This document shows positions 6,640-46,433 of a stretch of DNA of 64,000 bases, in pieces (the stretch's first letter is position 1; every line of letters begins with the position of its first letter). Both the position numbers and the translations under genes were made by a program. Below the pieces are notes generated by a model that was given only the letters and a program-made list of their open reading frames with translations, was not told the origin of the DNA and made no database searches. The stretch covers positions 62,001-126,000 of IMG/VR virus record IMGVR_UViG_3300042889_001272; one strand, 5' to 3'.

Positions 6640-6642
6640 GTC

Positions 6643-6671
6643 TTGACATTCGTCAGGGCTTAGTATATAAT
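6643..6671 (+). promoter_or_regulatory. sigma70-type promoter
   Basis: TTGACA (6643) - 17 nt - TATAAT (6666). Confidence 0.85.
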
Positions 6672-6677
6672 AATACT

Positions 6678-14842: not shown

Positions 14843-18241
<3,399 letters not shown>

Positions 18242-27320: not shown

Positions 27321-27321
27321 T

Positions 27322-27720
27322 ATGAGACTAAATGAATTCTTAGACAACGATGTTCCTGAAATAGGCGACATTTTAGAAGTAGAGATAGGCGACGAAGTTG
27401 TTGAAACTGTGATCACTGCCATAGACAATGGTGACTACATCTGTGAAACAGACAACAACACTAGTATGTCATTGCTTGAAGCAGAATATCACGGACGCAA
27501 AGTAAAATTGGGCAAACCCATGCCAGGCGATGTTAAAAAATCAAAAGTCTATGTTAGAAATCCTAAAACAGGTAAAGTAATCAAAGTAAACTTTGGTGAT
27601 CCTAATATGCGTATTAAAAAATCTAACCCTGCACGTCGTAAGAGTTTTAGAGCAAGACACAACTGTGCCAATCCCGGGCCGCGAACTAAAGCCCGTTACT
27701 GGAGTTGCAGTAAGTGGTAA
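27322..27720 (+). CDS. Putative internal head protein with basic C-terminal module
   Basis: MRLNEF start; LLEAEYHGRKVKL...KVNFGDPNM...RRKSFRARHNC...ARYWSC. Confidence 0.7.
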   Translation: MRLNEFLDNDVPEIGDILEVEIGDEVVETVITAIDNGDYICETDNNTSMSLLEAEYHGRKVKLGKPMPGDVKKSKVYVRNPKTGKVIKVNFGDPNMRIKKSNPARRKSFRARHNCANPGPRTKARYWSCSKW

Positions 27721-27737
27721 ACATTATAAATAATACT

Positions 27738-28187
27738 ATGAAAAAACTATTAATCTTAACCCTGCTAGCTATTAGCTCATTTGCATTTGCACAAACTGCA
27801 CCTAAAGAAAAACCCATGGTCATATATGACTGGAAAATAAACCGTGTTGTAGATGGTGACACAGTAGAAGTGGCCACACCTTGGGTACCAGATCCATTAC
27901 CTAAAAAGATCAGCATTCGTGTATTTGGGGTAGACACTCCGGAAAAAGGACACAGAGCGTTATGTCCCAGCGAAGCACAGCGTGGCGAAGCCGCCAGTGC
28001 ATTTACTAAAAAAGTTATCACAGAAAGCAAGACTGCCCGAGTGGCAGTCTTGAGCTGGGACAAATACGGTGGCCGTATGCTGGGCGATATCATTTTAGAT
28101 AATAATGTTAGCCTACGTGCGCTATTAATCAAGAATGGTTTTGCTCGAGAATACTATGGCGAAGCCAAGCAAAGTTGGTGTAATTAA
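27738..28187 (+). CDS. Thermonuclease (SNase-like) with signal peptide
   Basis: MKKLLILTLLAISSFAFA; RVVDGDT, IRVFGVDTPE, DKYGGRMLG, LIKNGFAR; TATAAATA at 27725. Confidence 0.88.
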   Translation: MKKLLILTLLAISSFAFAQTAPKEKPMVIYDWKINRVVDGDTVEVATPWVPDPLPKKISIRVFGVDTPEKGHRALCPSEAQRGEAASAFTKKVITESKTARVAVLSWDKYGGRMLGDIILDNNVSLRALLIKNGFAREYYGEAKQSWCN

Positions 28188-32436: not shown

Positions 32437-32503
32437 ACGACTATAATTTATATCAATTAAATGTTTTATTTCTAATAAATACTAGTTATATATTGGAGTT
32501 AGT

Positions 32504-33286
32504 ATGATATTAAATGAGGGCGGTGATGTATTTGCAGACACCGAAGAATATGACCAAAAAGAAGCAACCGCTTTACAGGCTGTTGTAGATAAGGAATTAT
32601 CTTCTATTGGTCTATCATCCGTTATGATTGGCAGCGGTTTTCATCCTACTCCTGGACAAATGAGCGGGGATTTGGATCTACAAATAGAATTACAAGATAT
32701 CATTGATCGCTTCGATGTACAACCTGACCCTGCTGTTAAAAAAGATACTATAGAAAATGCTGCCCGCAGAACGCTGGCAGCACATCTACAAAGTAAAGGA
32801 TATCAAACAAAACGAGCAGGTATAAATGTTTTTATTCGTGTTCCTTATCAAGGTAAGTTTTATCAAGTAGACTTGGAATGTATATATAAGGTAGCAAAAG
32901 TAAGCAAATATCATCAGCATAAAATTCCTCAAGGTAGTACATACAAAGGCGTGGGCAAACAAATAATGATATCTATGTTGGCCAAAGAAAAAAATATGAT
33001 GTGGAGTGGTTGGGAAGGTTTATTTCAACGTACTCCTGATAATAAAAAAGGCGACATGGTCGCCGATGACTTTGATGATATAGCAAAAGTATTACTCGGG
33101 CCGCAATATGGTGAAGAAGATTTAGGCAGTGTAGAATCTATATTGGCTGCGCTGCCAAGTGCAAAAGCACAAGATTTATTGGCCAGGGCCAAGGCCGACA
33201 AAGCATGGAAAGAACGTGTGCCACGTGTAGAAAGTCTGCGTGTTGGCACCAATGAATGGTTCCGTAATATGATGAACAAGTTATGA
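32504..33286 (+). CDS. Pol-beta-superfamily nucleotidyltransferase-like protein
   Basis: MILNEGG start; GS...SGDLDL and FYQVDL motifs; TAAATA at 32476. Confidence 0.55.
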   Translation: MILNEGGDVFADTEEYDQKEATALQAVVDKELSSIGLSSVMIGSGFHPTPGQMSGDLDLQIELQDIIDRFDVQPDPAVKKDTIENAARRTLAAHLQSKGYQTKRAGINVFIRVPYQGKFYQVDLECIYKVAKVSKYHQHKIPQGSTYKGVGKQIMISMLAKEKNMMWSGWEGLFQRTPDNKKGDMVADDFDDIAKVLLGPQYGEEDLGSVESILAALPSAKAQDLLARAKADKAWKERVPRVESLRVGTNEWFRNMMNKL

Positions 33287-33942
33287 AAATAAACGACATT
33301 TTACGCGAGTACGACCAAGACTCTGCCAATAGTAAACAAATCATAGCAAAGCTGAAACAACTTGGATACAAGAGTGTTGGCAGCGGATATGATGCAACTG
33401 TATGGACCAAAGAAGAAGGCAGTGTTATTAAAATCATTATGCCGCAGGAGTTGTCTCGAGCAGAAGGAGACGCATCGTTTTTAGGGTTTTATGAGTTTTA
33501 TACTACACATAAGAAGTCACCATTCCTGCCAAGATTTATCAGCATTGGTGGCGCCGATCATACTGTGTTTACACTCAATGGAGTAGACTATAGACAAATA
33601 TCAATGGAGAATCTTGAACCCATTGCTAATAACAGCTTTATGGAACAGATGGTGTGGGCACTCAGTGACTTGTCCATTATACCTTTTATGAAATGGAGAG
33701 ACGCTAAAGAGCAACTGCTTAACTCTGAGTTTTGGACAAATTTTGAAGGACCAGGTAGAGAAAGCGACATCGTAAAAGGACTAAGTAATTCGGCAGTAGA
33801 GAAGATGTATGCAAGTTTATTTGCAGTGATGCAAGAGCTTTTTCAATTTGGAAAAAGTCAAGGACTGGGTTGGGATTTACACACTGAAAATGTTATGCGT
33901 CGAGGTGATACACCAGTTATCACTGACCCGTTTACCGGATAA
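33283..33942 (+). CDS. Kinase-like protein (protein kinase/APH fold)
   Basis: MKINDILRE start; GSGYDATVW, VIKII, WDLHTENVM, VITDP. Confidence 0.65.
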   Translation: MKINDILREYDQDSANSKQIIAKLKQLGYKSVGSGYDATVWTKEEGSVIKIIMPQELSRAEGDASFLGFYEFYTTHKKSPFLPRFISIGGADHTVFTLNGVDYRQISMENLEPIANNSFMEQMVWALSDLSIIPFMKWRDAKEQLLNSEFWTNFEGPGRESDIVKGLSNSAVEKMYASLFAVMQELFQFGKSQGLGWDLHTENVMRRGDTPVITDPFTG

Positions 33943-33946
33943 TAGT

Positions 33947-34375
33947 ATGCTAATTAAAGAACTAACAGAAAACGAAGAGCCAACAAGAATCAAACTAGCT
34001 GACAATTCAGCCGCCAAGTCTTGGATTCAAAAAGTCTATAATTTATATCCGCAACAGTTTCAAAACAACCACGTCATGCCCATGGGTGGTCAAGGCGATG
34101 ATCAACAGTTTGCCATGTTTGAACTTGTTCCAAGTTTTAGCAAACGTGGTGCAGTGGAAGTAAAATGGTTTCAAGCATATCCGCTACGTGCAGGAGTAGG
34201 CAGTCGTGCCATGAAAGAATTACAGAGCTTGGCCAGTGAAGATGGTATTTCACTTACATTATTCCCGTGGGATAAAGGACAAGTCAGTCAAAGTAAGCTA
34301 ACCAAGTTCTACCAAGGTCGGGGATTTAAGCCCGCTGTCAAAGGCAGCAAAAGTATGCAATGGAGTCCTGAATGA
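33947..34375 (+). CDS. GNAT acetyltransferase-like protein
   Basis: Starts MLIKELTE (ATG 33947); RAGVGSRAM acetyl-CoA motif A, LTKFYQGRGF. Confidence 0.6.
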   Translation: MLIKELTENEEPTRIKLADNSAAKSWIQKVYNLYPQQFQNNHVMPMGGQGDDQQFAMFELVPSFSKRGAVEVKWFQAYPLRAGVGSRAMKELQSLASEDGISLTLFPWDKGQVSQSKLTKFYQGRGFKPAVKGSKSMQWSPE

Positions 34376-35520
34376 GATTATTGGAACTAAAAGAATTAAT
34401 GGAAGCAGTGGATCCCAAGCTGGGTCGTGCTTTTAATCACTTAGAGGATCTTGTATTCTTCTATGGTAGTGCTGGTACTATTGAAGCATTGGAACATTTA
34501 AAAGATATGAACACAGAACAAGGTAGTTCGAGTGTTCGTATGAAGTGGGACGGCAATCCTCAAATTTACTGGGGTCGTGAGCGTGGTGTATTTGTTCCTC
34601 CGCATGGTCATAATCAGTGGAGTCGAAAAGCAATGCCTGCTAATCCAACGGATGTATCAGACTTTATTATGTCTAGTGGTAAAGCGGTTACTCCGGAAGA
34701 AGTCAGTGCGAGACAACAGTTTGCAGATAAGTTTGCCAGTTTAGCACCATTATTTGAACCAGGCACTCCTGCAGACTTGGATGGCAACAGCACATTCTAT
34801 GTCTATGCTGATGCACTATTCTTATCACCACCCGAGTTAAAGGACGGAGTTTATAGTTTCAATCCTAATCCAAAAAGTCAAACAACATATCATGTGCGAG
34901 CAGACAGTGATCTAGGACGTAGAATTGCAGGTGCAGAAGTTATGGTTGTTGGCCATGCTTACTTTACTGAACACGGCGCACCTGATTCAGCACAAATTCC
35001 TATCAAAGACTTTACAATGTTTAATGCTAATCCAAAACTAATTGTCCTGGGTCCAATATATAATGTAGCACCAGTTAAAGTTGATAATACAATGATTCAA
35101 CAAGTAGAGAATCATATCAAGCAACATGCAAATCAAGTTGATACATTCCTACAAAGTGTTGCAGGTTTAAGTGACTTAAAACAAATCATTTATAACTATG
35201 TAAATCAAAGTGCTAAGGCAAAACAATTAGATAGTTTAAGTGCTAATCACTTCTTCCAATGGATGACTTCAAAAGTCAGTGCTCCGAAACAAGCAAAGAT
35301 CAAAGAATTAAATTCTGCACAGGGCAATGTATTAGAAGAGATATTTAAAATTGTTCGTGCTATACAAATATTAAAAGACAATGTCATTGACCAAATTGAG
35401 TCAGGACCTCGAGCAGATATCTGGGACACCAACGGCGAAGGTCGTGTGCGTTATGCAGATGGAAATAAACAATTCGGCAACGTGAAGTTTGTACCGAGAA
35501 AGCGTTGGACACCACAATGA
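34372..35520 (+). CDS. Ligase-like nucleotidyltransferase (KxDG motif)
   Basis: MRLLELKE start; NHLEDL, VRMKWDGNP, GEGRV, VKFVPR. Confidence 0.55.
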   Translation: MRLLELKELMEAVDPKLGRAFNHLEDLVFFYGSAGTIEALEHLKDMNTEQGSSSVRMKWDGNPQIYWGRERGVFVPPHGHNQWSRKAMPANPTDVSDFIMSSGKAVTPEEVSARQQFADKFASLAPLFEPGTPADLDGNSTFYVYADALFLSPPELKDGVYSFNPNPKSQTTYHVRADSDLGRRIAGAEVMVVGHAYFTEHGAPDSAQIPIKDFTMFNANPKLIVLGPIYNVAPVKVDNTMIQQVENHIKQHANQVDTFLQSVAGLSDLKQIIYNYVNQSAKAKQLDSLSANHFFQWMTSKVSAPKQAKIKELNSAQGNVLEEIFKIVRAIQILKDNVIDQIESGPRADIWDTNGEGRVRYADGNKQFGNVKFVPRKRWTPQ

Positions 35521-35915
35521 GAATAAACGAATTAGATACAGCAAAACCAAAGACCAATGCAAAACAATTGCCTGGTTATGATAGTTCCAATCCCTTACAC
35601 TCTACTTGGAGTCGCGTGTACAGTAGGCAAACATATGAAGCTAAAAGAAAAGGTTTTGCAGTGAATATAACAGCAGCCGATGCATGGGAAGTTATTAATA
35701 AACAAGGATGGCGATGTGCTTTAACTGGAGTGGCGTTTGTTCCAGCCGGTGCTGCCAGTCCAAATCAAGCTAGTTTAGATAGAATAAATTCCAACCAAGG
35801 TTACATACATGGTAATATTCGCTATGTAACATATCGTGTAAATATGTTTAAGAAAGATTGGCCGGATGATGTATTTTTTGCTCTTTGCAAACAAATTGCG
35901 GCACACGTAGGATAA
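35517..35915 (+). CDS. HNH-like endonuclease
   Basis: MRINEL start; WRCALTG, SLDRINSNQGYIHGNIRYVTYRVN. Confidence 0.6.
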   Translation: MRINELDTAKPKTNAKQLPGYDSSNPLHSTWSRVYSRQTYEAKRKGFAVNITAADAWEVINKQGWRCALTGVAFVPAGAASPNQASLDRINSNQGYIHGNIRYVTYRVNMFKKDWPDDVFFALCKQIAAHVG

Positions 35916-35923
35916 AAGAAATT

Positions 35924-38482
35924 ATGAAAATAAATCAAGTATTAGTAGAATCAGCAAGCGCAACAGTGGCGTTTGCTTTTGGCAGATTTAATCCTGCACA
36001 TCAAGGACATATTGAAGTATGGCGCACAGTGGAACAAGCTGGCGCAAATTGGTTCATTGGAACCAATGCCACTACCATTGGTCCTAATGATCCACTTACA
36101 TTCCAACAAAAATCTGCTTGGATGGAAGAAATTTATCCTCCTATCTCTGGACATATTGTTCCTGAACAAAGCGTATTGACATTGGCAGCTTACATCTTTA
36201 AGAAGACACGTAAGAATGAACGTGCCACGGTAGCTTATATTACTGATGAAACCGATTGGGCTTGGAGTGGTAAGTTATTAAATCAATACAATGGTGTCGA
36301 AGGTGTTCACGGTTATTACAAGTTTGCACAGATTATTCATGAGCCAAGCCCACGTGTAAGTAGTGCCACAGCATTACGTGATGCGGCTCGTGCCGATGAC
36401 AAGGTTGCGTTCTATCATGCCAGTGGAACTGATCCTAAATCAAAGGTCGCTGGACTAACATACTTTGACACAGTTAAACAAGCAGTTGAGAAATATCCAT
36501 TGCCAGTTAAACGTGGACAAAAAGTTAAAGAGCCTATTGTGGCGGAAGGCTCGGACGATGTTGCTAGTGCTACACCAGCAAAAAACGAACGCGGAAGATT
36601 CACGGCGTGGGATGATGATGAACCGATGCGTTTGAAATGTGAAGATGGTGAGTTTAGAACCATACAAGAAATCAATATGCTTAGACAGAAAATAGGAATG
36701 AAACCTTTTTCTATCAAAAGTCAGCAAGGTGTGGCGGAAGGTAACTTAAACGAATTTGCACCTGGTGCTGGCGATGAAGGTGGCGGCGAAGATCCATACA
36801 AGTACCCCAAGCCAGAGCGGTATCGTCGTAGTGTAGATTTCTTTGGTCAGTTTGAAGCAGATCATTTTGATCGTGAAGACATGGATGACGCCAAGGGCGA
36901 GTTCAAAGGCTATTGGGGCAAAGATCAAATTGCCTATTTTAAATTTGATAACCCCAAGCGCACAGGCAGCGATGACCCGGGCATGGGCTGGTACTATGAA
37001 CCCCAGTTGAGCGGTCATGGTGATAATACCAGTGTGACACCTGCTGTTGATAATACCGAACAACGCAAGCAACAAGAATTAAGCATGATTCGTGCGTTTT
37101 TAAAATCTGGCAATCGACCAAATCCAGACAGTCAAATTTATAATTTAATGAAACGACATGGTATAGCGGAAAGCGACGAAGATCGTATAGCATACAAATT
37201 ACAATGGCCCGAACTTGTCAACAAAGTTAACAGTGCAATGAGGGCCATGGGTTGGAAAGGCCAACGTAAAGACGATGGTTCTTTTATGTTCATCACTAAA
37301 GGCCAACTCGACGATGAGTTTTACATTGTTATTATAGACAACAAAGGCAATGACATGTTTACCTATGCATTAGGCACAGTCGAAGAAGGTTCCCCACATA
37401 TCGGCGAACAAGATACATTGCCCAATACAGAAGCTAGCATAAGTGAATTGATGAATTCTATTAGGGAAGGATTTGGATTAAATGAAAATGCTGAACAACC
37501 TAATAATCCATATGGTTACAAAGTAGGTCAAACAGTCAAACTACATAACAAGCTACAGGGTCGTGTAATTGATATTTTCGATGACAGTATCGAAGTATTA
37601 TTAACTGACGGGCGCACTGTTACGGTGAACTTCCGTGACGCTGAAGTTCTAGGAGAGCACAGTGTAGCCGAAGCAGAACAACAAACTGTGGCCAAGACCT
37701 GGGATCAAATGACAAGTCAAGAGAAACTAAGTGGTGTTAAAGGTCGCACAGTATGGAATGAAAAAACACAGAGATATTACACAGTGTTTGATGTTCCAAT
37801 AAAACAGCCCACAGACGAAGCAAGTTTAGCAACTATGCGTGATTACTTTGCTGGTGATCAAAATGCTCAAGATCCTACTACGCTGGCAAAACAACGTACT
37901 TGGTTTGATAAAACTAAAGATAAAAACGGGCGTGCCATTGTAGATAAAAGATTTAGAAGTCCAGAAGAATTTCGACTATGGTTAAAACAAAACAAATTAA
38001 AACAAATTTCCGGCGTTAAAGAAGATGAAGAGCAGGGAGAAGTTGAACAACAAGGACAACTTATTCCATGGCCGGCAGGTACTGCTAAAGTTCATGTCAG
38101 CGATGTATACGATTGGTATAAGCTAGGACAAGTTATCAGTGATTTAGATGATGCTAATCCTGAAGCATTTGGACAAGGTGCTCCGCAGACAGTTATTGCT
38201 TTTGGCAGCGAAGAAGAAGAAAGCAAACTAATGCCAATGTTAAAGCGTTTAGGTCTGCGTATAGATGATATAGATCCTGCGGGCGCCGAATTAGATGAAG
38301 CATATCACGCAGGAGAACTTTATGAATACTTAAAGAAAGTTCATGGCAAGTGGGCATTAGTAAGTAAAAGCAATCCAAAGAAAGTATTACAATACTATCG
38401 TGGCGGAGATGAAAAACCCAGTGATGAATGGGTTAATAAAGTAGAACGTCGTGTACATAGCTTTGAAAGTAAAAAGAAATGA
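35924..38482 (+). CDS. Cytidylyltransferase-like (HxGH) enzyme fused to multiple small modules
   Basis: Starts MKINQVLVE (ATG 35924); FGRFNPAHQGH, RVSSATALR; C-terminal modules joined by IVAEG, QGVAEG, HGIAES, HSVAEA, LDEA. Confidence 0.7.
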   Translation: MKINQVLVESASATVAFAFGRFNPAHQGHIEVWRTVEQAGANWFIGTNATTIGPNDPLTFQQKSAWMEEIYPPISGHIVPEQSVLTLAAYIFKKTRKNERATVAYITDETDWAWSGKLLNQYNGVEGVHGYYKFAQIIHEPSPRVSSATALRDAARADDKVAFYHASGTDPKSKVAGLTYFDTVKQAVEKYPLPVKRGQKVKEPIVAEGSDDVASATPAKNERGRFTAWDDDEPMRLKCEDGEFRTIQEINMLRQKIGMKPFSIKSQQGVAEGNLNEFAPGAGDEGGGEDPYKYPKPERYRRSVDFFGQFEADHFDREDMDDAKGEFKGYWGKDQIAYFKFDNPKRTGSDDPGMGWYYEPQLSGHGDNTSVTPAVDNTEQRKQQELSMIRAFLKSGNRPNPDSQIYNLMKRHGIAESDEDRIAYKLQWPELVNKVNSAMRAMGWKGQRKDDGSFMFITKGQLDDEFYIVIIDNKGNDMFTYALGTVEEGSPHIGEQDTLPNTEASISELMNSIREGFGLNENAEQPNNPYGYKVGQTVKLHNKLQGRVIDIFDDSIEVLLTDGRTVTVNFRDAEVLGEHSVAEAEQQTVAKTWDQMTSQEKLSGVKGRTVWNEKTQRYYTVFDVPIKQPTDEASLATMRDYFAGDQNAQDPTTLAKQRTWFDKTKDKNGRAIVDKRFRSPEEFRLWLKQNKLKQISGVKEDEEQGEVEQQGQLIPWPAGTAKVHVSDVYDWYKLGQVISDLDDANPEAFGQGAPQTVIAFGSEEEESKLMPMLKRLGLRIDDIDPAGAELDEAYHAGELYEYLKKVHGKWALVSKSNPKKVLQYYRGGDEKPSDEWVNKVERRVHSFESKKK
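36538..36550 (+). repeat. GVAEG junction repeat, copy 2
   Basis: TGTGGCGGAAGGC. Confidence 0.85.
36719..36742 (+). repeat. GVAEG junction repeat, copy 3
   Basis: AGTCAGCAAGGTGTGGCGGAAGG; 23 nt identical to 44407-44429. Confidence 0.9.
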
Positions 38483-38736
38483 GATCCGTAAATCAAAGTT
38501 ATACAACTATTGATATCATTGTCGATGAATTTGACGAACAAATTATTGATATGTTAAAACAACGGTATCCTGCTTTATCTATTGCAAGAGTAAATGCTAC
38601 TAGATTTAACAAAGATTCTACTAACTTGTTAAAGTTTTATCTATATCATTGGATATTTGATAACTATGAATCTGCTATCGTTGACATTAATAATTATTAC
38701 AATAAATATACTATTAGCACGAAAGTCGTAGCATGA
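38479..38736 (+). CDS. AT-rich hypothetical protein
   Basis: Coupled ORF lacking the shared N-terminal tag. Confidence 0.45.
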   Translation: MRSVNQSYTTIDIIVDEFDEQIIDMLKQRYPALSIARVNATRFNKDSTNLLKFYLYHWIFDNYESAIVDINNYYNKYTISTKVVA

Positions 38737-40949
38737 AATATCTAGAACTAAAAGAACAACTACTCAACGAAATTAATATGAGCCCCAGTGCTTTACGCCG
38801 TGCTGCCAAAGACATTGGTGCTAAGGCAGGCATGGAATTTGAAATGATTGTTCCCGGTGCTGCCGAAAGCGAAGAAGGTGATGACTATCAAGAACCAGAC
38901 TACGACAGTGATGAAAGCATTCGCAGTATTCAAGATGCCTATGATTTCTTCTACGATGGTGATTTTAATAGCCGTAGAGATGCAGAGCGCCTACGTGATC
39001 AAATGACAGACAACTACACTGATTGGCTGGGCACTCAATCTGGGGATCGCTGGGAATCTGATAAAGAAGAAATGATATATGATTGGCTGCGCTACAATGC
39101 CGCGCCCAGCGATGTATTTGGTATACTAGAAGTAGCTGCCAGCGCCAGCGGAGATTATCCTGATCCCTCTAAAGAAGATTACAGAAATGCTGCCGCCAAA
39201 GTAGCTGAAGATAGAATAGATCCATGGTATGACGATGCTTATCAAGATTTTACTGACAATTTCTACAGAGATGCAGACATGGAAAGTGAATGGCTCGAAC
39301 ATGAAGCTATAGAAAGTATGGTCGACGTTGAACAGAATTATAACATTGTTTGGCCACATTATCATAATCCGGATAACTCAGGCGGTGATGTTAGTATACA
39401 AGATGCCGCAGACAGTTTCAGTAATGCCATTGGTAAAGAAGTACAGGCCAGCGACAATTATCACAGTCGTAGTATAACAAGACCCAGTGCCACAGAATTA
39501 CACTATGTTGTGGAACCTGACGGTAGCTTAGAAGCAGATGAACCCGGAGATGGCGGTTTAGAATTTGTCAGTCCAGCATTGCCCATAGATGAATTATTAG
39601 ATGACTTGAAAAAAGTTAAAGCATGGGCAGATAAGTTTGGCTGTTATACAAATGACAGCACAGGTTTGCACATCAACGTCAGTGTTCCAAAATGGCAAGG
39701 TGATTTGCAAAATCTAGACTATGTTAAACTTGCTATTTTAATGGGCGACGAATATGTTTTAGAAAACTTTGGACGCAGTGGTAATACCTATGCCAAAAGC
39801 GCACTAAAGATTGTTAAAGATAATATCACACAGCGTCCAGAAGATGTCAAACGTTTGTTAGACACTATGAAAGAGCACTTAAACACCAGCGCCGCAAAAT
39901 TAATACACAGTGGCGCCACTAGTAAATACACCAGCGTTAATACCAAAGATGGTTACATTGAATTCCGTAGTCCAGGTGGTGATTGGTTAAACAGTAACTT
40001 TGATAAGATTGAATCTACATTATTACGTTTTGTTGTAGCCATGGATGCTGCCGCAGACGAAACAAAATACAAAGAAGAATACGCCAAGAAACTTTATAAG
40101 TTATTAGCAGGCAATGACAAAGATACTACAAATACCATGGTTTACTTTGCCAAATATGCCGCAGGTGAATTGCCTCAGAGCGCATTAAAGAGTTTTATTA
40201 AACAAGCACAGTTTGAACGTAAGGCAGGCAAAGAACCCAATGGTAAAAAAATGTGGTATCGTGTTGACAAAGAAGGACGTGGTAAGAGTGGTGCAAGCAT
40301 TGAAGTTGTTGCTAGATCAAAAGAAGAGGCATTAGAAAAAGCAGCCAGTAATTGGAGTTTAAAGCTAAGTGCATTAACTGCGGCCGCTGTTTATCCAGTT
40401 CGCCCCTATGAAGAGCAACGCTACGAAATATTTAATTTAAACACAAACAATAGCGTAGAAGATGCTGAAGGTATTACTAATGATAGAGATGCATTAGTGC
40501 GTTTGCAGGATTACATTGAACATGGTCCTCACGGATTACAACGTGGACAAGCAACAGATATGTTTGGCATAAGACGAGTTGGCGGAGATGGCGAACCTAT
40601 ACAACCAAATCCAATTCGTGCTACTGTAGGCGCTCCACAACCTGCTGGTAGTGTTGGACAATCAACTCCTAGACCTATTCCCGGTGTTATTGATATTGAG
40701 CCTGATATAGAACAGAACTTTACACCTGTACCAGGTAGCACAACAAACTTACAGCAACAACGTGCAACACCCGGCACGTTTACAGGTGCTTGGAAAGTAA
40801 TGAATGTCGACACTGGACAAGAATTATATAGATTCAGCGGCATTGGTAATTCGCAGTCAGATGCTAATGGTGTCGCTTTACAATGGATAAGACAACATGC
40901 CCCGAACACAGACTTGGTACAAATTGAAGTTGTGCCCATAATGAGCTAA
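38733..40949 (+). CDS. Putative amidoligase (COOH-NH2 ligase type 2) with C-terminal modules
   Basis: MKYLELKE start; GMEFE, VEPDGSL, GLEFVSP, STGLHINVS, IEFRSPGG. Confidence 0.7.
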   Translation: MKYLELKEQLLNEINMSPSALRRAAKDIGAKAGMEFEMIVPGAAESEEGDDYQEPDYDSDESIRSIQDAYDFFYDGDFNSRRDAERLRDQMTDNYTDWLGTQSGDRWESDKEEMIYDWLRYNAAPSDVFGILEVAASASGDYPDPSKEDYRNAAAKVAEDRIDPWYDDAYQDFTDNFYRDADMESEWLEHEAIESMVDVEQNYNIVWPHYHNPDNSGGDVSIQDAADSFSNAIGKEVQASDNYHSRSITRPSATELHYVVEPDGSLEADEPGDGGLEFVSPALPIDELLDDLKKVKAWADKFGCYTNDSTGLHINVSVPKWQGDLQNLDYVKLAILMGDEYVLENFGRSGNTYAKSALKIVKDNITQRPEDVKRLLDTMKEHLNTSAAKLIHSGATSKYTSVNTKDGYIEFRSPGGDWLNSNFDKIESTLLRFVVAMDAAADETKYKEEYAKKLYKLLAGNDKDTTNTMVYFAKYAAGELPQSALKSFIKQAQFERKAGKEPNGKKMWYRVDKEGRGKSGASIEVVARSKEEALEKAASNWSLKLSALTAAAVYPVRPYEEQRYEIFNLNTNNSVEDAEGITNDRDALVRLQDYIEHGPHGLQRGQATDMFGIRRVGGDGEPIQPNPIRATVGAPQPAGSVGQSTPRPIPGVIDIEPDIEQNFTPVPGSTTNLQQQRATPGTFTGAWKVMNVDTGQELYRFSGIGNSQSDANGVALQWIRQHAPNTDLVQIEVVPIMS

Positions 40950-40950
40950 T

Positions 40951-42030
40951 ATGAGACTACTAGAATTAAAAGAAGATAAATCATACCAACCTACTAGCAT
41001 TGATGTAGGTGACGAAGTACTTGTGGGTAAGTTTAAAAATCGCAGAGCAGAAGTTAAAGGGTTTACCACTGATGATAATAATCAGCCTGTGCTAAAAACT
41101 TCCAAAGGTGATCAACATTTATTCAAGCCACGCATTGCTAAACTTATGCCCAACGAGGTTAATGAAGATTCCGGTAACAGCCTTCAAACTATTATTCAAT
41201 CCTTTGTCAATAGTCCTTTAGGACAAAAATATAAACAATACGATTGTAAAACTGTAACCAGAGCATTTGTACAATGGACAGAACAAAATAAGATTTCAAC
41301 GCAGGTAGTTTCATTGGCTCCTCCCAGTGCTGATTTTATTGCAAAGAATCCAAGATATAAAGGCAAGAGTGGACAGGGCGATGGACACATTATGCCTATA
41401 GTAAATGGCAATGCCATTGACTTCACTGTTAGACAATTTGGTGTTAGTAGACCTTTTAACAATCCACTAGTAACGCCAACCAATAGTCTGCCAGCAGTAT
41501 ACGGCAAATTCGGATATTTTACAGACAAGCCTGAATGGTTTTTAGGAGGCAAGTCCCATTGGATTGGTGCATTGAACGCAATACCAAAAGAAATCTTTAA
41601 TCAAAATTTTGGCGATGAAATGTTAGAGCATACTATGACAGAAAACTTTGCCGATGGTCGAGTAAAAGGTAAGAGTAGTCCTGGACGTGTTAAGCGTAGT
41701 GGCGCAAGCTGTGACGGAAGTGTCTCTGATCTAAGATCAAAAGCAAAAGATGCCAGTAGTGAACGTGCTAAAATGTATCACTGGTGTGCTAACATGAAAA
41801 ACGGCCGTGCTAAAAACGAATCAGAAATGTTAGAAGATTTAAACGTTATATGGAAAGATGTATTAGAAGCAGGTGTATATAAAGGTTATCCTTGTACCAA
41901 AGACTGTAGCGGACATGCCGCAGGCGATCGTTGGGCAGATGCTAGAGATATAACAGATCCCAACGAGTGCCCTTACAGTAACAACAGTTTCTGGGAAGGC
42001 TGTCTAGCGCATACCGATGAACAAGAATAA
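40951..42030 (+). CDS. Modular putative internal head polyprotein
   Basis: MRLLELKE start; modules separated by VNED, MTENF, MLED, VLEA. Confidence 0.65.
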   Translation: MRLLELKEDKSYQPTSIDVGDEVLVGKFKNRRAEVKGFTTDDNNQPVLKTSKGDQHLFKPRIAKLMPNEVNEDSGNSLQTIIQSFVNSPLGQKYKQYDCKTVTRAFVQWTEQNKISTQVVSLAPPSADFIAKNPRYKGKSGQGDGHIMPIVNGNAIDFTVRQFGVSRPFNNPLVTPTNSLPAVYGKFGYFTDKPEWFLGGKSHWIGALNAIPKEIFNQNFGDEMLEHTMTENFADGRVKGKSSPGRVKRSGASCDGSVSDLRSKAKDASSERAKMYHWCANMKNGRAKNESEMLEDLNVIWKDVLEAGVYKGYPCTKDCSGHAAGDRWADARDITDPNECPYSNNSFWEGCLAHTDEQE

Positions 42031-42047
42031 CGAATAAATATACTATT

Positions 42048-43403
42048 ATGCGATTACTAGACCTTAAACTAACAGAAGCGGCACTTAGTGCAGGCGAACT
42101 AACAAAATACTTTGACTCTGAAACAGAGCCGACAAAGTGGAAACGTCTTAACGTTTTCTTAAACAAAGTCCTACAAAAAGAACCATTCGAATTAGTAGAT
42201 GGCAGCACAGCATTAGTTAATACATCTGAATACAAACGTATAGCAGATATTTTTAATTTAGGAACTGTGCCAAGTAATTTTAAAGTTGACACAGATAAAG
42301 GCCCAATGGGTTTAAGTAAGTTTTTTAAATCAGCAGAACTGGGAGGCAAGGGTGCTGGCGGCGCCGGTTTGTCTAACAAAGGTGAAGTCAGTGAGGGTAT
42401 TCTAGGTGCTAGTTTATTTGCTAAACTTATAGCAAGGACTCGTGGTAAGATTGATATTATCAGTGGTAATGACATTTGGAACGTCATTGACATGTTAAAT
42501 CAAACACAGGAAGATCATTACGGTGTTAAAGTTAAAGATGCTAGTAAATCTGCTGTTAATGATAGTATTCAATATACATTAAAGTTAAAGCCAGGACCAT
42601 ATGCAGACTTAATGGACGAAGCAAAACGAGCATTGTTAAGTGATGTAACTAACAGCGCAGTAGCATATGCTAATAGTGCAGATGCTCAAGCATACTGTGA
42701 ATATTTTTACTTAAATGGTAAGCCGGATATTATTCATGTTATTACAGACGGTATCAGCGGAAGCACTACTAAGAAATCTGACATTGAAGTTGTTGTCACA
42801 GATCCAAAAACTGGTAAAACTACACATCAACAACTTAACATTAGTCTTAAAGCAGGCAGTGACCAAATGGGTCAAGTCGGTCAAGGTGATGTTGGCGAAG
42901 AATTTGATGCTCAGAAGAAACTATGGAACTCTTTTGGCATTGACATCGAATCAAGCAGAGCTGAATTTAATAAAGTATTAGAGAAAAAAGGTTTAATAGC
43001 AGCCATAGAATCTATCTATCGTGATGCTGCCACATTCCTTCAAGACTTGTTAGCAGGCAGTTTTGATGATGCCGAATACTTGTTTTTAAAAGACTTGGTA
43101 AAAGGCATTGACTATTTTGCTACATTAAACGATCCCTCAGTTATTTTAGTTAGTTTAGAGCGCGGAACTTATGAAGTTATGAGCTTTGCTAACTTAGAAA
43201 AACAATTAAATAACATTGATTTAGACGCTAGTTATAACGAAAACTCTGCTACTCCTCAGATAGAAATATTTGATAAAAATAGTGGCAGTCAGTTATTTAG
43301 AATAAGAACAAAACGTGAAACTAAAAAGGGCGGTGGCATTTATGTCCGTAATTACATTGAAAAAGGTCCTTTGTTAAAACAGTTGACCAGCATCAAGAAG
43401 TAA
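42048..43403 (+). CDS. Possible PD-(D/E)xK nuclease-fold protein
   Basis: MRLLDLKLTE start; SEGILG...KSDIEV...NISLKAG spacing; TAAATA at 42035. Confidence 0.45.
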   Translation: MRLLDLKLTEAALSAGELTKYFDSETEPTKWKRLNVFLNKVLQKEPFELVDGSTALVNTSEYKRIADIFNLGTVPSNFKVDTDKGPMGLSKFFKSAELGGKGAGGAGLSNKGEVSEGILGASLFAKLIARTRGKIDIISGNDIWNVIDMLNQTQEDHYGVKVKDASKSAVNDSIQYTLKLKPGPYADLMDEAKRALLSDVTNSAVAYANSADAQAYCEYFYLNGKPDIIHVITDGISGSTTKKSDIEVVVTDPKTGKTTHQQLNISLKAGSDQMGQVGQGDVGEEFDAQKKLWNSFGIDIESSRAEFNKVLEKKGLIAAIESIYRDAATFLQDLLAGSFDDAEYLFLKDLVKGIDYFATLNDPSVILVSLERGTYEVMSFANLEKQLNNIDLDASYNENSATPQIEIFDKNSGSQLFRIRTKRETKKGGGIYVRNYIEKGPLLKQLTSIKK

Positions 43404-43439: not shown

Positions 43440-43649
43440 ATGAAAATAAAAGAACTTATCAGCGAAGACGGCAGCGCAGGCGGTATTAGCAGTGGCGCTA
43501 TAGCTTCTGCTCCAGCCAGCAATTTGTTTGCTGTACCTATGAAACGCAATATGGCAATGACTCGCAAGCGACCTAAAAAGGAAGCTGAAGAATTTAAAAC
43601 TAAAAAAGATAAGTCTAATGTTTTAGAAAATGGAACTAACAATGGATAA
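43440..43649 (+). CDS. Small putative internal head protein
   Basis: MKIKELISE start; TAAATA at 43429. Confidence 0.65.
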   Translation: MKIKELISEDGSAGGISSGAIASAPASNLFAVPMKRNMAMTRKRPKKEAEEFKTKKDKSNVLENGTNNG

Positions 43650-45024
43650 GCAAAGAGCCAGACAGCTTTATGAACTAGCAGATCGTTTAAGCAAGCTAGA
43701 CATTAATTCGCTGTCAGAACAACAATTAGAACAACGTAATACAATGATTTCTAAGTTGCAAGAAGAAGTTAAAACAATTAAAGAGTTTGCTCCTGACGAT
43801 GGCGACGATGGCGCAGGTGGCGAAGAAGATACATTACACAAATATGCCCGTATGTGGTATAATGGCAATGAAACTACACAACAACAAGTTGAAAAAATAT
43901 TAGACCGTATGGGTTGGGAAATTGGCGAATTAGAATCAGAAGAAGGTGGCGCTTTTGTTGTACAATCAGGTGACGAAAATGGTAATAGTTATATTGGCTT
44001 TGCAGTCGCTGACTTGTTAGAAGGTATTACTGATAATAAAGACGCTGGCGAATATGATCAAGAAGGCGATATGGCTCGTCAAGATCTTGCCACTGCCGCT
44101 AATGCCGCAGAAGAATTACGCAGTATTTTAGACAGCGATGAGAACTTGCCAGAATGGGTTCAATCAAAGATTACTAAAGCAGTTGACTATTTAGATACTG
44201 TTCGTGATTATATGAAAAGTAAAGATCAAGATGTAACAGAAGCTTCACAGCGAGTTGATTCACTGGTCACTGACGCATTAAAAATAATGCGTGGTTCATC
44301 AATGAATGATGCTGTTCAAGCATTAAAGACTGTGCTTGGTGATAGAGAATACAATGGCCGACGCAATCATTACAATTTCTATGTTAGACAAATCATGGAT
44401 ATGTATAGTCAGCAAGGTGTGGCGGAAGGCGTTGAGGAATCCAATGTAAAGATTTTACAAAAGTTGCTTGCAGACGAAGGTTACACTTATCCAATTGGAA
44501 TACTAAGTCGAAGATTAAAACTTCTTTCCACAAATCAATCAAAAGTGCTTGCGAGATTGTTTGTGAATGCTCAAAGGGCACAAGATGAAGAATTAAAACT
44601 TGAATTGATTGATAAAATTGATGGTGTAATTTCCAGGGAAGCAGAGAGAAGAAGCGATCCATGGAAAGGTGTGGCGGAAGGCGTTGCAGAAACTTTGTCA
44701 ATGGACGAAGCCAAAAAAGTGCTACGTCATTATGGTGCTGATAATTTCAAAACAACCAGCAACGAATTGCATTTTTATAAAAACGGCCGCCCATTCAGTG
44801 TTGACTTGATCATGAACGATGATGCAACTCGCAGTGTAAGTCTAAGCCAGTTAAATTCAGCTACTCGTAGATTAAAAGGCCAAGGTGTGACTGAAACTAA
44901 AAAGACAAGCCCAAAACTCACGCCAGTTAATATCAAAAAAACTGACCCAGTCAGTGAAGAAATAAATACAGAAGCATACGAAAGACTACAAAAGGTTTTC
45001 GCATTTAAGAATTATGAAAGTTAA
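43630..45024 (+). CDS. Modular polyprotein with GVAEG junctions
   Basis: Junctions IKEFAP, LLEG, QDVTEA, QGVAEG, KGVAEG, QGVTET; start 43630 or 43642. Confidence 0.7.
   Translation: MELTMDKQRARQLYELADRLSKLDINSLSEQQLEQRNTMISKLQEEVKTIKEFAPDDGDDGAGGEEDTLHKYARMWYNGNETTQQQVEKILDRMGWEIGELESEEGGAFVVQSGDENGNSYIGFAVADLLEGITDNKDAGEYDQEGDMARQDLATAANAAEELRSILDSDENLPEWVQSKITKAVDYLDTVRDYMKSKDQDVTEASQRVDSLVTDALKIMRGSSMNDAVQALKTVLGDREYNGRRNHYNFYVRQIMDMYSQQGVAEGVEESNVKILQKLLADEGYTYPIGILSRRLKLLSTNQSKVLARLFVNAQRAQDEELKLELIDKIDGVISREAERRSDPWKGVAEGVAETLSMDEAKKVLRHYGADNFKTTSNELHFYKNGRPFSVDLIMNDDATRSVSLSQLNSATRRLKGQGVTETKKTSPKLTPVNIKKTDPVSEEINTEAYERLQKVFAFKNYES
44407..44434 (+). repeat. GVAEG junction repeat, copy 4
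   Basis: AGTCAGCAAGGTGTGGCGGAAGGCGTTG. Confidence 0.9.
44666..44686 (+). repeat. GVAEG junction repeat, copy 5
   Basis: AAGGTGTGGCGGAAGGCGTTG; 21 nt identical to 44414-44434, 252 nt apart. Confidence 0.9.
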
Positions 45025-45026: not shown

Positions 45027-46433
45027 ATGAAACTATTTGAACTATATCAACAAAATACCCTACAAGGTACTAATAACTTAAAACAGATCTCAGAAGCTGT
45101 GGCCAATAAGACTGGTGCAGTTATTACTGTAGGTAACACTCAAGTTAGACTTGGCATTAACAGTGCTAAGTACGTTCTTGGTTTATATGAAACCGCAGTT
45201 GCCAATGGCACCAGCGAACAATTCTTAGAAGGCCTGGCCAATCTAAATCCAACAATGGTCATGGAAAACGATAACACAATGCGTCACATTGTCAGCAAGT
45301 TCAAGCATGAAGTTAAAAACTTCTTAGCTGGTGATGATATGAGCGATGACTTATATCATGCATTGTATGACTACTACAGCGACCACGGTGAAATGCCATA
45401 TGGTATTGCTAAAGCTCGCGACGGTGATCCTTATGAATGGGTTCACATGAGATTCGATCGTGATGTACATGATTACGTTGGCGGCAACAATCCAGATGTT
45501 CCAGCATTACCACAAGCAAATATGTCAATGATGCCGCGTCAAGAAAGCATGTACGAAGCATCTACTATCAATGGTAAAGTACAAGACCCTAAAAGCCTAA
45601 CTTGGAAACAAACTAGTATGAGCTATGAAAAAGCTGTAGAAAAATACGGTAAAGACAAAGTCAGAAAAGAAGGTAAAAATCGTATAGGCAACGAAGTAAT
45701 TGCAGTACATGTTCCGCTAGAGGAAAGCAATATGTATGAATCTAAGAAAACAAAGATGAAAGAAGGATGGGATGAGATGATGGCCGCCGTTCGAGCCAGT
45801 GCTCAAGATGAAAAAAGTGCTACTGGTAAGTTTTCCAGATCAAAGAATCCTGACTCAGGCGGAACAGTTTATAGCCGCAAATATAATGCAGACACGGGTC
45901 AATCCATTGAGCCAACTAAAGATCCAGAAGGTAAATCTCCTATCAAGCGTAGTGTAGGTCGTCCTAATGCTGGAGTTACAGGCTCAGATGAAGCAGGAAC
46001 TAAATTTGGCGATTATTCAAGCTGGTATCATAAATCCAAACGCACACACGGCGATCGTAAAATTGTTGGCGGTAGAACTGGTGCTATGGCAGTTATTGAA
46101 AAAGGTAAAAAATATCTAGTAGTCGGTAAGTGGGAAAACGACGAAGGTGTTATGTTTGATAAACCCAGTGAATTGGTTACATTAGATGCATTGAAATCTT
46201 ACAAAAGCGGTAAAGGTCGTCCGAAGAAAGTTCGTGAATGGATTGAAACTCTGCGTTTTGTATCTGAGGGTGAAACAACTAAAACAGCAACTGGTATTAA
46301 ACATAGTGCTAAAGGCAAATATGGCGCCAGTGAGGAAGAAGAAAAAGAACCGGAAAGTCTAAACAAAAGTTTGACCAGCAAGTTAGATAAGAGTATGGGC
46401 ATTAAACACGATCACGGAAATAAAAAGAAATGA
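45027..46433 (+). CDS. Modular putative internal head polyprotein
   Basis: MKLFEL start; ISEA, VMEN, MYEA, LEES, MKEG, VSEG junction-like sites. Confidence 0.65.
   Translation: MKLFELYQQNTLQGTNNLKQISEAVANKTGAVITVGNTQVRLGINSAKYVLGLYETAVANGTSEQFLEGLANLNPTMVMENDNTMRHIVSKFKHEVKNFLAGDDMSDDLYHALYDYYSDHGEMPYGIAKARDGDPYEWVHMRFDRDVHDYVGGNNPDVPALPQANMSMMPRQESMYEASTINGKVQDPKSLTWKQTSMSYEKAVEKYGKDKVRKEGKNRIGNEVIAVHVPLEESNMYESKKTKMKEGWDEMMAAVRASAQDEKSATGKFSRSKNPDSGGTVYSRKYNADTGQSIEPTKDPEGKSPIKRSVGRPNAGVTGSDEAGTKFGDYSSWYHKSKRTHGDRKIVGGRTGAMAVIEKGKKYLVVGKWENDEGVMFDKPSELVTLDALKSYKSGKGRPKKVREWIETLRFVSEGETTKTATGIKHSAKGKYGASEEEEKEPESLNKSLTSKLDKSMGIKHDHGNKKK

Follow-up and report, generated by a model that had tools for sequence, protein, structure and literature searches.

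Late-gene cluster of predicted capsid-tagged enzymes with a repair-like core in an uncultured T4-like giant phage

In phage T4 the internal proteins and the enzyme Alt carry an N-terminal capsid-targeting sequence (CTS) that is processed by the gp21 prohead protease (PMC9026906, PMC3012670, PMC12373910). Alt is the precedent for an injected enzyme. Cleavage occurs after L/I-X-E, and a CTS of 10 residues suffices (PMC9026906). The polyvalent proteins of phages and conjugative elements are likewise predicted to be delivered with the DNA, and combine a truncated Ser/Thr kinase, GNAT, Pol-beta-fold NTases, peptidoglycan hydrolases and nucleotide-metabolism domains (Iyer et al. 2017, PMC5512222). 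In the T4-like cyanophage S-CREM2, non-structural proteins were detected in purified virions by mass spectrometry, among them a cytidylyltransferase and an APH/ChoK-like kinase (PMC10665884). A very small family-X polymerase limited to palm and thumb is paired with an ATP-type ligase in African swine fever virus (ASFV), as a virus-encoded minimal base-excision repair system. In bacterial LigD the polymerase and ligase modules are fused in one polypeptide, although the polymerase of LigD is of the primase type and not of family X.

The locus analysed here lies in a window of 64,000 nucleotides (positions 62,001 to 126,000 of IMG/VR record IMGVR_UViG_3300042889_001272) of a 235.6-kb genome of an uncultured T4-like giant phage. 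A preliminary description had reported six tightly coupled genes at 32504-38482, each with an N-terminal tag and a distinct catalytic motif, and this observation was confirmed. All six open reading frames, O1 to O6, are on the + strand, and their junctions are overlaps of 4 nt or gaps of 4 to 8 nt. The six motifs are present, and most are invariant in family alignments. However, the tagged cluster is larger than had been described and runs at least from 25494 to 46810.

The leader has the form M-[RK]-hydrophobic-x-[ED]-hydrophobic and ends in [LIV]-x-E. The strict pattern ^M[RK][LIFVY]x[EDQ][LIFVY] matched 13 of 293 crude genes of the genome. Twelve of these are among the 23 genes at 25.5-46.8 kb of the window, and only 1 is among the 270 genes elsewhere (Fisher p = 2.5e-14), while 0 of 1082 internal Met positions matched. 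The leader is thus not a chance occurrence. The single outside match is a small prohead-core gene of 70 aa in the gp67 position, between the portal and protease genes. O2, O4, O5 and O6 fit the strict pattern, whereas O1 (MILNE/GG; the slash marks the predicted cleavage point) and O3 (MLIKELTE) fit a looser form. The tag is not a DNA repeat, as codons differ and the upstream regions are unrelated, and it is conserved as a peptide pattern in orthologues down to 35% identity. Orthologues keep the pattern and an [LIV]-x-E directly before the conserved core, although the leader sequence itself drifts.

The leader behaves like a capsid-targeting propeptide of the T4 type. The genome encodes a gp21-type protease (PF03420, E 5e-25), a gp22-like scaffold and gp23 (PF07068), and the N-terminus of gp23 has five [LIV]xE sites, one of them just before the mature core. 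Some O1 orthologues begin exactly at the predicted cleavage point, with MGGNVF, and the leaders were disordered in both structure models obtained, those of O1 and O4. The motif AATAAATACTAGTT at 32474-32487 (+) resembles a late promoter and lies 30 nt upstream of O1. ATAAATA occurs 35 times on the + strand against 66 expected, and 25 of the 35 lie 11-80 nt upstream of gene starts. AATAAATACTA precedes both O1 and the portal gene at 29-30 nt, but its function as a T4-type late promoter is inferred. Untagged neighbours of the cluster are metabolic genes, and tagged genes for a cell-wall hydrolase and an HD_4 protein occur in related loci.

Virion association had been named beforehand as a point on which the interpretation would stand or fall. 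No direct proteomic or N-terminal sequencing data exist for this phage or a close relative, but a homologue of the O6 N-domain, S-CREM2 gp154 (hhalign prob 99%, E 2.4e-18), was found in purified virions together with a kinase. It has the similar leader MKNFSSFLTE/A and a similar C-terminal KOW/SH3-like element. In contrast, S-CREM2 has no O1 homologue, and its DUF6267 gene, a homologue of O4, is untagged, lies elsewhere in the genome and is not on the virion list. Packaging is therefore plausible but unproven. Compared with T4, the otherwise unrelated proteins also share a leader of about 5 to 15 residues ending in L/I-x-E, and the genes also sit in hypervariable loci. At least 14 genes are tagged rather than 4, and most encode sizeable enzymes (polymerase-, ligase-, NMNAT-, kinase-, GNAT- and amidoligase-like) rather than small inhibitors. 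The leader is described here as its own pattern and was not compared letter by letter with the CTS of T4.

Alternatively, these could be ordinary cytoplasmic late enzymes of repair or nucleotide metabolism, whose similar N-termini would reflect a translation-initiation preference or another intracellular role such as localisation or regulated proteolysis. AAA/AGA second codons and A/T-rich starts are common in well-translated genes, and the DUF6267 and cytidylyltransferase homologues of cyanophage P-HM1 lack the leader and sit among replication genes. The leader of O1 comprises only 5 residues, and complex prediction for the protease and the leader gave no answer. However, the pattern is absent from 269 of 270 other genes, including highly expressed structural ones, and the conserved acid at position 5 and the [LIV]xE at the junction are peptide features maintained with different codons. 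Together with the position of the one outside match and the S-CREM2 virion data, this makes the alternative appear unlikely.

The six genes are not equal members of one toolkit. O1, O4 and O6 are the conserved backbone, present in 43, 80 and 76 of 80 related loci, respectively, while O2, O3 and O5 are sporadic inserts. Structure prediction and fold searches had been proposed beforehand to check the enzyme assignments. O1 (32504-33286, 260 aa), described as an NTase, was modelled with AF2 at pLDDT 90.6 with residues 1-5 disordered, and the 50 best Foldseek matches were all Pol lambda/beta (E 1.6e-7). The VIA comparison gave Z 12 and an rmsd of 3.0 Å, with residues 10-211 of the model matching Pol beta 142-335. 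O1 thus has a minimal family-X DNA polymerase palm+thumb fold and is not a generic protein or RNA nucleotidylating enzyme. G43, S54-G55-D56-x-D58 and D123 are invariant in the family.

O4 (34372-35520, 382 aa; leader MRLLELKELME/A) belongs to DUF6267 (PF19782, E 2e-16). The model had a pLDDT of 89 with residues 1-19 disordered, and its best fold matches were RNA/DNA ligase adenylyltransferase domains at Z 5.5-5.9. K58-W-D-G61, D147, E356-G357 and K372 are invariant, motif I is present, and one homologue has an intein inserted right after KWDG. O4 is therefore regarded as a divergent ligase-like covalent nucleotidyltransferase with a helical insert, although the fold match is modest (Z < 6) and no OB domain is present. 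A separate, untagged canonical ATP DNA ligase exists in the genome, so O4 is not the replicative ligase.

The nearest structural neighbours of O4 are RNA ligases (REL1, T4 Rnl2, Rnl3, Trl1), so the substrate could be RNA. The O1-O4-O6 unit might then repair RNA, for example tRNAs cut by host anticodon nucleases, with O4 acting as an RNA ligase and O1 as a 3'-end adding or tailing enzyme, analogous to the T4 Pnkp/Rnl1 counter-defence. A weak profile hit of O1 in PDB was a terminal uridylyltransferase, and no recognisable PF09414 RNA ligase was found in the genome. On the other hand, the closest structures of O1 by a wide margin are templated gap-filling polymerases including the thumb subdomain, and not CCA-adding or poly(A) enzymes. 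No end-healing kinase/phosphatase of the Pnkp type was recognised; O2 has a protein-kinase fold and is sporadic. RNA repair is considered a less likely reading.

O6 (35924-38482, 852 aa; leader MKINQVLVE/S) consists of an N-terminal HxGH nucleotidyltransferase domain of about 190 aa and a variable, poorly modelled C-terminal extension with a KOW/SH3-like element (Atlas pTM 0.28 for the C-terminal part). It matched phrog_3041/395 'cytidyltransferase', and 25 of 27 family members hit PF01467. The best profile-to-PDB hits were the NMN adenylyltransferases (NMNATs) 1f9a, 1lw7 and 2qjt at E 8e-4 to 5e-3, but these matches cover only about 50 residues. H26-x-G-H29 and SSATALR are conserved, and many orthologues are only about 190 aa long. 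The role of the HxGH enzyme is unexplained. The preliminary description had mentioned NAD-related rescue as one possibility, and the unit could be a nucleotide or NAD+ counter-defence device in which the NMNAT-like enzyme rebuilds NAD+ and the other two nucleotidyltransferases act on small nucleotides or signalling molecules of NAD-depleting or cyclic-nucleotide defences. Proteins with the O1 domain occur fused to Tad3 (PF25185, a Thoeris inhibitor), to NUDIX plus CTP_transf_like and to NT5C-like domains, and ligase-family enzymes can use NAD+. However, the Pol X thumb and the ligase fold are typical of polymer-acting enzymes, and no Nampt-like partner was seen in the cluster. The fusions with Tad3 and NUDIX are also a small minority compared with the O1-O4 fusions, and this device is considered improbable.

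Of the 150 best O1-family representatives, 34 carry O4 in the same polypeptide, and at least 9 of these 34 also carry an HxGH domain. The repeated fusions point to nucleic-acid end repair or processing rather than modification of host macromolecules. As in ASFV, a very small palm+thumb polymerase is paired with an ATP-type ligase, the fusions in relatives recall LigD, and the ASFV ligase is among the structural matches of O4. There is, however, no detectable sequence relationship to those proteins, O4 lacks the OB and DNA-binding domains, and an HxGH enzyme is part of the unit. Relatives of O1, O4 and the O6 N-domain occur as multi-domain fusions of up to 1800 aa, and the domain repertoire is that of polyvalent proteins. 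In this window, by contrast, the domains are mostly separate genes, each with its own leader. No zincin-type processing peptidase was seen, and processing would be by the prohead protease. The Pol X-like, DUF6267 and HxGH trio was not found in the passages of PMC5512222 returned by term searches, which did not cover the full paper.

The kinase and GNAT assignments of the preliminary description also held. O2 (33283-33942, 219 aa; leader MKINDILRE/Y) is a minimal protein-kinase-like enzyme of the T7 gp0.7 / Kinase-PolyVal type and was found in only 3 of 80 related loci. It matched phrog_15752 (E 1.2e-5), its Atlas neighbours carry PF27024, with APH and Pkinase folds, and its homologues carry PF27024 or PF18762, the latter corresponding to the truncated Ser/Thr kinase of the polyvalent repertoire. 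G33 and G35 of the G-loop, K50, GWDLHTENVM and D215 are invariant. O3 (33947-34375, 142 aa), whose true start is at the internal MLIKELTENE, is GNAT acetyltransferase-like, contains the GVGSR motif and was found in 4 of 80 loci. The Atlas score to viral GNAT clusters was 0.95, and several of 172 homologues are named GNAT by JGI or carry PF13508/PF00583.

O5 (35517-35915, 132 aa; leader MRINELD) is an HNH/EndoVII-related small 'endonuclease' family protein that matched phrog_3322 (E 4e-19) and other HNH/EndoVII/Srd phrogs. The SLDR..GN..N motif is family-wide, but the whole family has Arg where HNH enzymes have the catalytic His, and O5 also lacks the N-terminal Zn-finger region of its relatives. 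Its assignment as a cutting enzyme was therefore not supported as worded. O5 occurs in only 5 of 80 loci, at exactly the O4/O6 junction, while near-identical genomes lack it. Relatives are annotated as endonucleases, and of 97 matching phage records, one lies inside a split polA gene (DNA polymerase I). O5 might thus be the remnant of a free-standing homing-endonuclease-type mobile gene rather than cargo with a host target. This remains a tentative possibility, because O5 carries the leader of the cluster (M[RK][IV]NELD in four variants), which almost never occurs by chance, because it lacks the Zn-finger region and shares the family's Arg in place of the catalytic His, and because T4 Srd-type non-nuclease proteins match the same region.

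The earlier interpretation, a pre-packaged toolkit that nucleotidylates, phosphorylates, acetylates, ligates and cuts host macromolecules before phage transcription begins, analogous to T4 Alt but much broader, is thus only partly supported. The explanation favoured here, with moderate confidence, is a late-expressed cargo locus. By analogy with the CTS of T4, the propeptide would bring each protein into the scaffolding core of the prohead, the gp21-type protease would cut it off after the Glu, and the mature enzymes would sit with the packaged DNA and enter the cell with it. Most likely the unit of O1, O4 and the O6 N-domain fills and seals breaks or gaps in nucleic acid at the very start of infection, and the target could be the phage's own damaged or attacked DNA. 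Since the genome already has PolB and a DNA ligase, a repair role would be partly redundant. The HxGH enzyme may supply or regenerate the nucleotide cofactor. The analysis itself established the tag and its clustering, its conservation as a peptide, the folds and catalytic motifs, the fusions and the presence of the protease, whereas packaging, cleavage, ejection, action before transcription and the substrate were inferred. In this view, the lineage-variable cassettes slotted between the backbone genes (the T7-0.7-like kinase, the GNAT, the HNH-like protein and an amidoligase, and in relatives a cell-wall hydrolase and a RelA/SpoT-type HD hydrolase) are takeover or counter-defence add-ons.

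The remaining tagged genes flank O1 to O6 and are also on the + strand. The amidoligase gene at 38733-40949 (738 aa; leader MKYLELKE) has an Amidoligase_2 domain (PF12224, E 1.8e-7) and is preceded by ATAAATA at 38701. Its tag is conserved in 6 orthologues, and O1-amidoligase fusions exist (proteins P0195 and P0226). Further tagged genes at 40951-42030, 42048-43403, 43440-43649, 45027-46433 and 46430-46810 have the leaders MRLLELKE, MRLLDLKLTE, MKIKELISE, MKLFELYQ and MKIAEILSE and matched only PHROGs of unknown function; one gene without the strict tag lies at 43630-45024. Upstream, at 25494-27720, two tagged genes encode proteins of 608 aa (MRFNELTE) and 132 aa (MRLNEFLD). They are separated from O1 by untagged metabolic genes, including a FAD/NAD oxidoreductase at 28344 and PNP_UDP_1 at 29951.

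The window is part of a single IMG/VR virus contig of 235,561 bp, of which it comprises bases 62001-126000. The contig has a G+C content of 38% and an estimated completeness of 66%. The virus is T4-like and encodes a portal protein, a gp21-type prohead protease (PF03420, E 5e-25, 85 bits), a gp22-like scaffold and a gp23 capsid protein (PF07068, E 3e-81) in the T4 order. A gp44 clamp loader and a gp43 PolB are located within the window. A megablast search of the region against GenBank phages gave no match, and no cultured phage in GenBank matches the region at the DNA level. A close homologue of O4 (P0014) lies on a 337,890-bp contig, which is consistent with the CheckV estimate of about 350 kb for the full genome of this phage type.

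All six ORFs of the preliminary description were found on the + strand, with 4-nt overlaps or gaps of 4-8 nt: O1 at 32504-33286, O2 at 33283-33942, O3 at 33947-34375, O4 at 34372-35520, O5 at 35517-35915 and O6 at 35924-38482. The observation of a tagged operon of six genes was thus confirmed, while its interpretation as a pre-packaged toolkit for modifying host macromolecules was only partly supported. The strict leader pattern, M-[RK]-hydrophobic-x-[EDQ]-hydrophobic at the first residue, was found in 13 of 293 crude genes. Twelve of these belong to the 23 genes between 25.5 and 46.8 kb of the window, compared to 1 of the 270 other genes (Fisher p = 2.5e-14), and none of 1082 internal methionines matched the pattern. 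The thirteenth tagged gene encodes 70 aa and lies between the portal and protease genes, the position of the T4 prohead-core gene 67. O1 (MILNE|GG) and O3 (MLIKELTE) carry looser versions of the leader. The tagged cluster therefore extends well beyond the span reported first, including 25494-27720 upstream and running to 46810 downstream. Untagged metabolic genes, an FAD/NAD oxidoreductase and a PNP_UDP_1 phosphorylase, sit in between. An untagged ORF of 149 aa inside the cargo region (27738-28187) starts with a lipoprotein-like signal peptide (MKKLLILTLLAISSFAFAQ).

The leader is shared by otherwise unrelated proteins, as in the T4-type internal head proteins that bear a CTS, and it is a peptide feature and not repeated DNA. 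Identical leaders use different codons, the 30 nt upstream are unrelated and upstream identity is at chance level, so that repeated DNA or mobile regulatory cassettes were rejected as an explanation. Eighty related loci from IMG/VR showed the same pattern in O4, O6, O1, O2 and the downstream genes, while the leader sequence itself drifts. In the orthologue sets an [LIV]-x-E lies immediately before the conserved core in every family, for example ...LVE|AKQLGRAFNHLED in O4, ...LFE|APGETVG..FGRFNPPHxGH in O6 and IL-x-E|GGNVF in O1. Some O1 orthologues start at MGGNVF, exactly at the predicted cut. The leaders are the only disordered N-terminal parts of the two AlphaFold models, those of O1 and O4; structure prediction was run without the P-HM1 and Melnitz rows in the alignment. 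In T4, gp21 cuts after L/I-X-E (PMC9026906), and the first 10 residues of IPIII suffice to load foreign proteins into the head (PMC9026906, PMC3012670). T-even internal proteins share nothing but that leader (PMC12373910). The gp23 N-terminus of the present phage also carries five [LIV]xE sites, one of them just before the mature core. Although the leader and the protease agree with the T4 scheme, cleavage itself was not tested, and prediction of a protease-leader complex gave no answer and is not used as evidence.

The heptamer ATAAATA is the core of T4-type late promoters. It is under-represented in the genome, with 35 copies observed and 66 expected, but 25 of the 35 copies lie 11-80 nt upstream of gene starts. 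AATAAATACTA precedes both O1 and the portal gene at 29-30 nt. Further copies precede the genes at 38733, 42048, 43440 and 45027, and the ORF with the lipoprotein-like signal peptide has its own copy 13 nt upstream. Across the whole genome, and in the window at 27725, 29090, 30958, 32474, 38701, 42033 and 43427, the heptamer sits 11-32 nt before many gene starts, which gives a usable map of putative late promoters.

Association with the virion had been named beforehand as a point on which the reading could fail. Presence in the capsid, N-terminal trimming and ejection into the host were not measured for this phage, and the only precedent is indirect. Mass spectrometry of purified virions of the T4-like cyanophage S-CREM2 detected a cytidylyltransferase (gp154), an APH/ChoK-like kinase and neighbouring hypothetical proteins (PMC10665884). 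S-CREM2 gp154 is homologous to the O6 N-domain family (hhalign probability 99%, E 2.4e-18) and begins with MKNFSSFLTE|A. A virion-detected protein of 237 aa next to it, gp156 (positions 6013-6723 of locus L090), has a classic small Pol-beta NTase motif (GG...SDIDL) and a leader-like MKKLISELK; it was considered as an O1 homologue, but this was rejected (hhalign E 0.14). The cultured Methylophilales phage Melnitz has adjacent DUF6267 and HxGH genes with the leaders MKKFSELTSE and MKKFSEIIE|A, while cyanophage P-HM1 has the same gene pair without leaders. A reading without packaging of the tagged proteins was retained as a rival.

Modelling and fold searches had been suggested at the outset to examine the proposed active sites. 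The O1 model (pLDDT 90.6) matched family-X DNA polymerases only. The top 50 Foldseek hits were all Pol lambda or Pol beta (E 1.6e-7), and the VIA comparison gave a Z score of 12 and an rmsd of 3 A, with O1 residues 10-211 on residues 142-335 of Pol beta, which is palm plus thumb; Pol lambda was matched over residues 375-575. The GS...SGD(L/M)D motif and a third carboxylate (G43, S54-G55-D56-x-D58 and D123) are invariant. The 8-kDa lyase domain and the helix-hairpin-helix fingers domain are absent, as the model aligns only from Pol beta residue 142 onward, and no Pfam, NCBIfam or PDB sequence match was found. O1 works like a minimal Pol X but is not a classified member. In tblastn searches against phages, O1, O2 and O3 gave no match. 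Single-sequence PDB searches with all six proteins yielded nothing usable, and the NCBIfam search gave only a sub-threshold cytidylyltransferase domain hit.

O4 belongs to Pfam DUF6267, a family of more than 1200 clusters that are all hypothetical; literature searches for DUF6267 and for 'cytitidyltransferase' found no paper. Motif I of the ligase and capping-enzyme superfamily, K58-W-D-G61 with the nucleotidyl-accepting lysine, is invariant, also in the P-HM1, Melnitz and S-CREM2 homologues. In one homologue (P0045) a mini-intein of about 150 aa (PF14890) is inserted exactly after KWDG, with Ser at +1. Foldseek searches with the O4 model (pLDDT 89) gave only E values of 0.15 or higher, and VIA and the motifs were relied upon instead. 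Adenylyltransferase domains of RNA and DNA ligases were the best long-alignment matches in both the guided and the unbiased fold searches, but only at Z 5.5-5.9, and short helical-bundle hits to the helical insert reached similar values (Z 5.0-5.2) in the unbiased search. D147, Y161/F163, E356-G357 and K372 are candidate residues for motifs III-V. No ligase Pfam family matched, and these data leave it undecided whether O4 has the adenylyltransferase fold with motifs III-V. The model has a helical insert of about 100 residues and ends after motif V, and it has no C-terminal OB domain of the kind present in DNA ligases and capping enzymes. O4 was rejected as the replicative ligase of the phage because a canonical, untagged ATP DNA ligase (PF01068) lies elsewhere in the genome. 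Repair of RNA was kept as a rival to repair of DNA.

O6 has an N-terminal HxGH nucleotidyltransferase domain of about 190 aa, in which the (G)RFxPxHxGH motif and the C-terminal S-x-T-x-x-R motif of the NMNAT (NadM/NadR) type are conserved as FGRFNP(P/A)HxGH and SSATALR. Of 27 family members, 25 hit PF01467, while the window protein itself scored 20.2 bits against a cut-off of 21. The closest solved sequences are NMN adenylyltransferases, but only over about 50 residues and at E 8e-4 to 5e-3, and specificity for NMN and ATP was not examined. A role in NAD or nucleotide counter-defence was considered as another rival reading. Many orthologues consist of the HxGH domain alone. The C-terminal 650 residues of O6 are variable and poorly modelled, and Atlas gave only weak leads with a pTM of 0.28, so that this part was left unassigned. 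The last 55 residues or so (residues 799-852, window 38320-38479) are 55% identical to a stretch in the 320-kb Stenotrophomonas phages CM1 and RAS14, suggesting a shared small C-terminal module.

O2 is a minimal kinase. The Gly-rich loop, the VAIK-type Lys, the catalytic D..N loop and the DFG-type Asp are all present, and G33, G35, K50, D198, N203 and D215 are invariant in 30 homologues, some of which carry PF27024 (T7 kinase) or PF18762 (Kinase-PolyVal). The protein ends 4 residues after the DFG-like D215 and has no C-lobe. O3 is GNAT-like according to Atlas and the annotations of its homologues. Its motif, L-R-A-G-V-G-S, is off by one from the consensus of the acetyl-CoA-binding motif A, Q/R-x-x-G-x-G/A, no direct Pfam hit was obtained and the protein was not modelled, so assignment to the GNAT acetyltransferases was neither secured nor excluded. 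O5 belongs to a phage 'endonuclease' family related to HNH, EndoVII and Srd profiles. This relationship rests on PHROG profiles only, without a Pfam HNH match. The catalytic general-base His of the HNH nucleases is missing, as the whole family has S-L-D-R/K where HNH enzymes have D-H, although the Asn residues are conserved. O5 also lacks the N-terminal zinc-finger region of its relatives. As a rival to a cargo function, O5 was considered as a mobile remnant.

O4 and O6 co-occur in 76-80 of the 80 related loci, and O1 lies directly upstream in 43. O2, O3 and O5 occur in only 3-5 loci, slotted between the backbone genes. A profile search with the O1 family found 915 clusters. Of the best 150 representatives, 34 carry the DUF6267 domain in the same polypeptide, 29 of them in the order O1-O4. 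At least nine of these 34 also carry an HxGH domain, one as leader-O1-O4-HxGH. Two representatives are fused to an amidoligase like the gene at 38733, and others are fused to GNAT, to NUDIX plus CTP_transf_like, or to Tad3, a Thoeris inhibitor. Among the O1-family representatives P0229, P0201 and P0195, the O1 domain is fused to Tad3 (PF25185), to an MTPAP-like NTase with CTP_transf_like and NUDIX domains (1802 aa), and to an NT5C-like domain with an amidoligase; these are giants resembling polyvalent proteins. Gene order plus repeated fusion shows that O1, O4 and the HxGH domain act together. A census of tagged ORFs in the 80 loci gave 29 families. They include leader-tagged genes (L036:2841-3635 and L014:3114-3659, both in related loci) for a cell-wall hydrolase with a peptidoglycan-binding domain (PG_binding_1) and for a RelA/SpoT-type HD_4 domain, a possible (p)ppGpp hydrolase. 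This repertoire overlaps the polyvalent proteins described by Iyer et al. (PMC5512222), but within the window the domains are separate genes and not joined in one polypeptide.

The best reading is a hypervariable, late-expressed, capsid-targeted cargo locus. In this view its conserved core is a polymerase-ligase-cofactor unit for mending or processing nucleic-acid ends at entry, around which lineage-specific takeover or counter-defence cassettes are placed. The leader with its clustering and conservation, the catalytic motifs, the fusions and the presence of the protease rest on the analysis itself, while packaging, cleavage and ejection are inferred, and neither the substrate (DNA or RNA) nor the role of the HxGH enzyme was assigned. 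A UV-damage endonuclease, UvdE (window 21610-22629, PF03851, E 1e-34), lies 10 kb upstream of the cargo cluster and fits a DNA-repair theme, but it is untagged. A more far-reaching possibility, which is considered tentative, is that a widespread clade of aquatic T4-like phages packs a three-enzyme repair kit into the capsid and injects it with the genome. The kit would be a minimal Pol X, a new ligase family (DUF6267) and an NMNAT-like cofactor enzyme, and nicks, gaps or UV/abasic damage in the incoming DNA, or damage inflicted by host defences, would be mended before any phage gene is expressed. This would be the first virion-borne DNA repair system in a bacteriophage and would assign a function to DUF6267.

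The packaging logic is known from T4, and the domain repertoire is known from polyvalent proteins. Capsid-targeted internal proteins are known almost only from T-even coliphages, where they are small inhibitors plus one enzyme (Alt). Here the same logic appears to load a whole set of enzymes in an abundant, uncultured lineage, with more than 1200 DUF6267 clusters and more than 900 O1-family clusters present in metagenomes. What is new is the scale and enzymatic nature of the tagged cargo in this lineage, the leader as a simple sequence rule for predicting virion cargo in these phages, and the Pol X-like/DUF6267/HxGH unit, for which no description could be found. The linkage of the three proteins by gene order and fusion makes an uncharacterised Pfam family, mentioned in no full-text paper, and a new minimal polymerase directly testable. 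If delivery is confirmed, it would show that phages can bring nucleic-acid repair or counter-defence enzymology into the cell ahead of gene expression, which is relevant to the survival of sunlight-damaged virions and to defence evasion. The small polymerase and ligase could also interest enzyme users.

Other genes of the window were recorded as well. SUF iron-sulfur assembly genes lie at 53-3660 and encode a SufBD core (PF01458, E 5e-78), a SufC-like ABC ATPase and a class-V aminotransferase/cysteine desulfurase. A ClpA/ClpB-type double AAA+ chaperone of 733 aa (AAA_2, AAA_lid_9, ClpB_D2-small) is encoded at 11377-13578. Several proteins (8518-9198, 14843-18241, 20262-20822 and 62981-63346), including one of 1132 aa with a Pfam Collagen hit, have collagen-like G-x-y repeats and are probably fibres.
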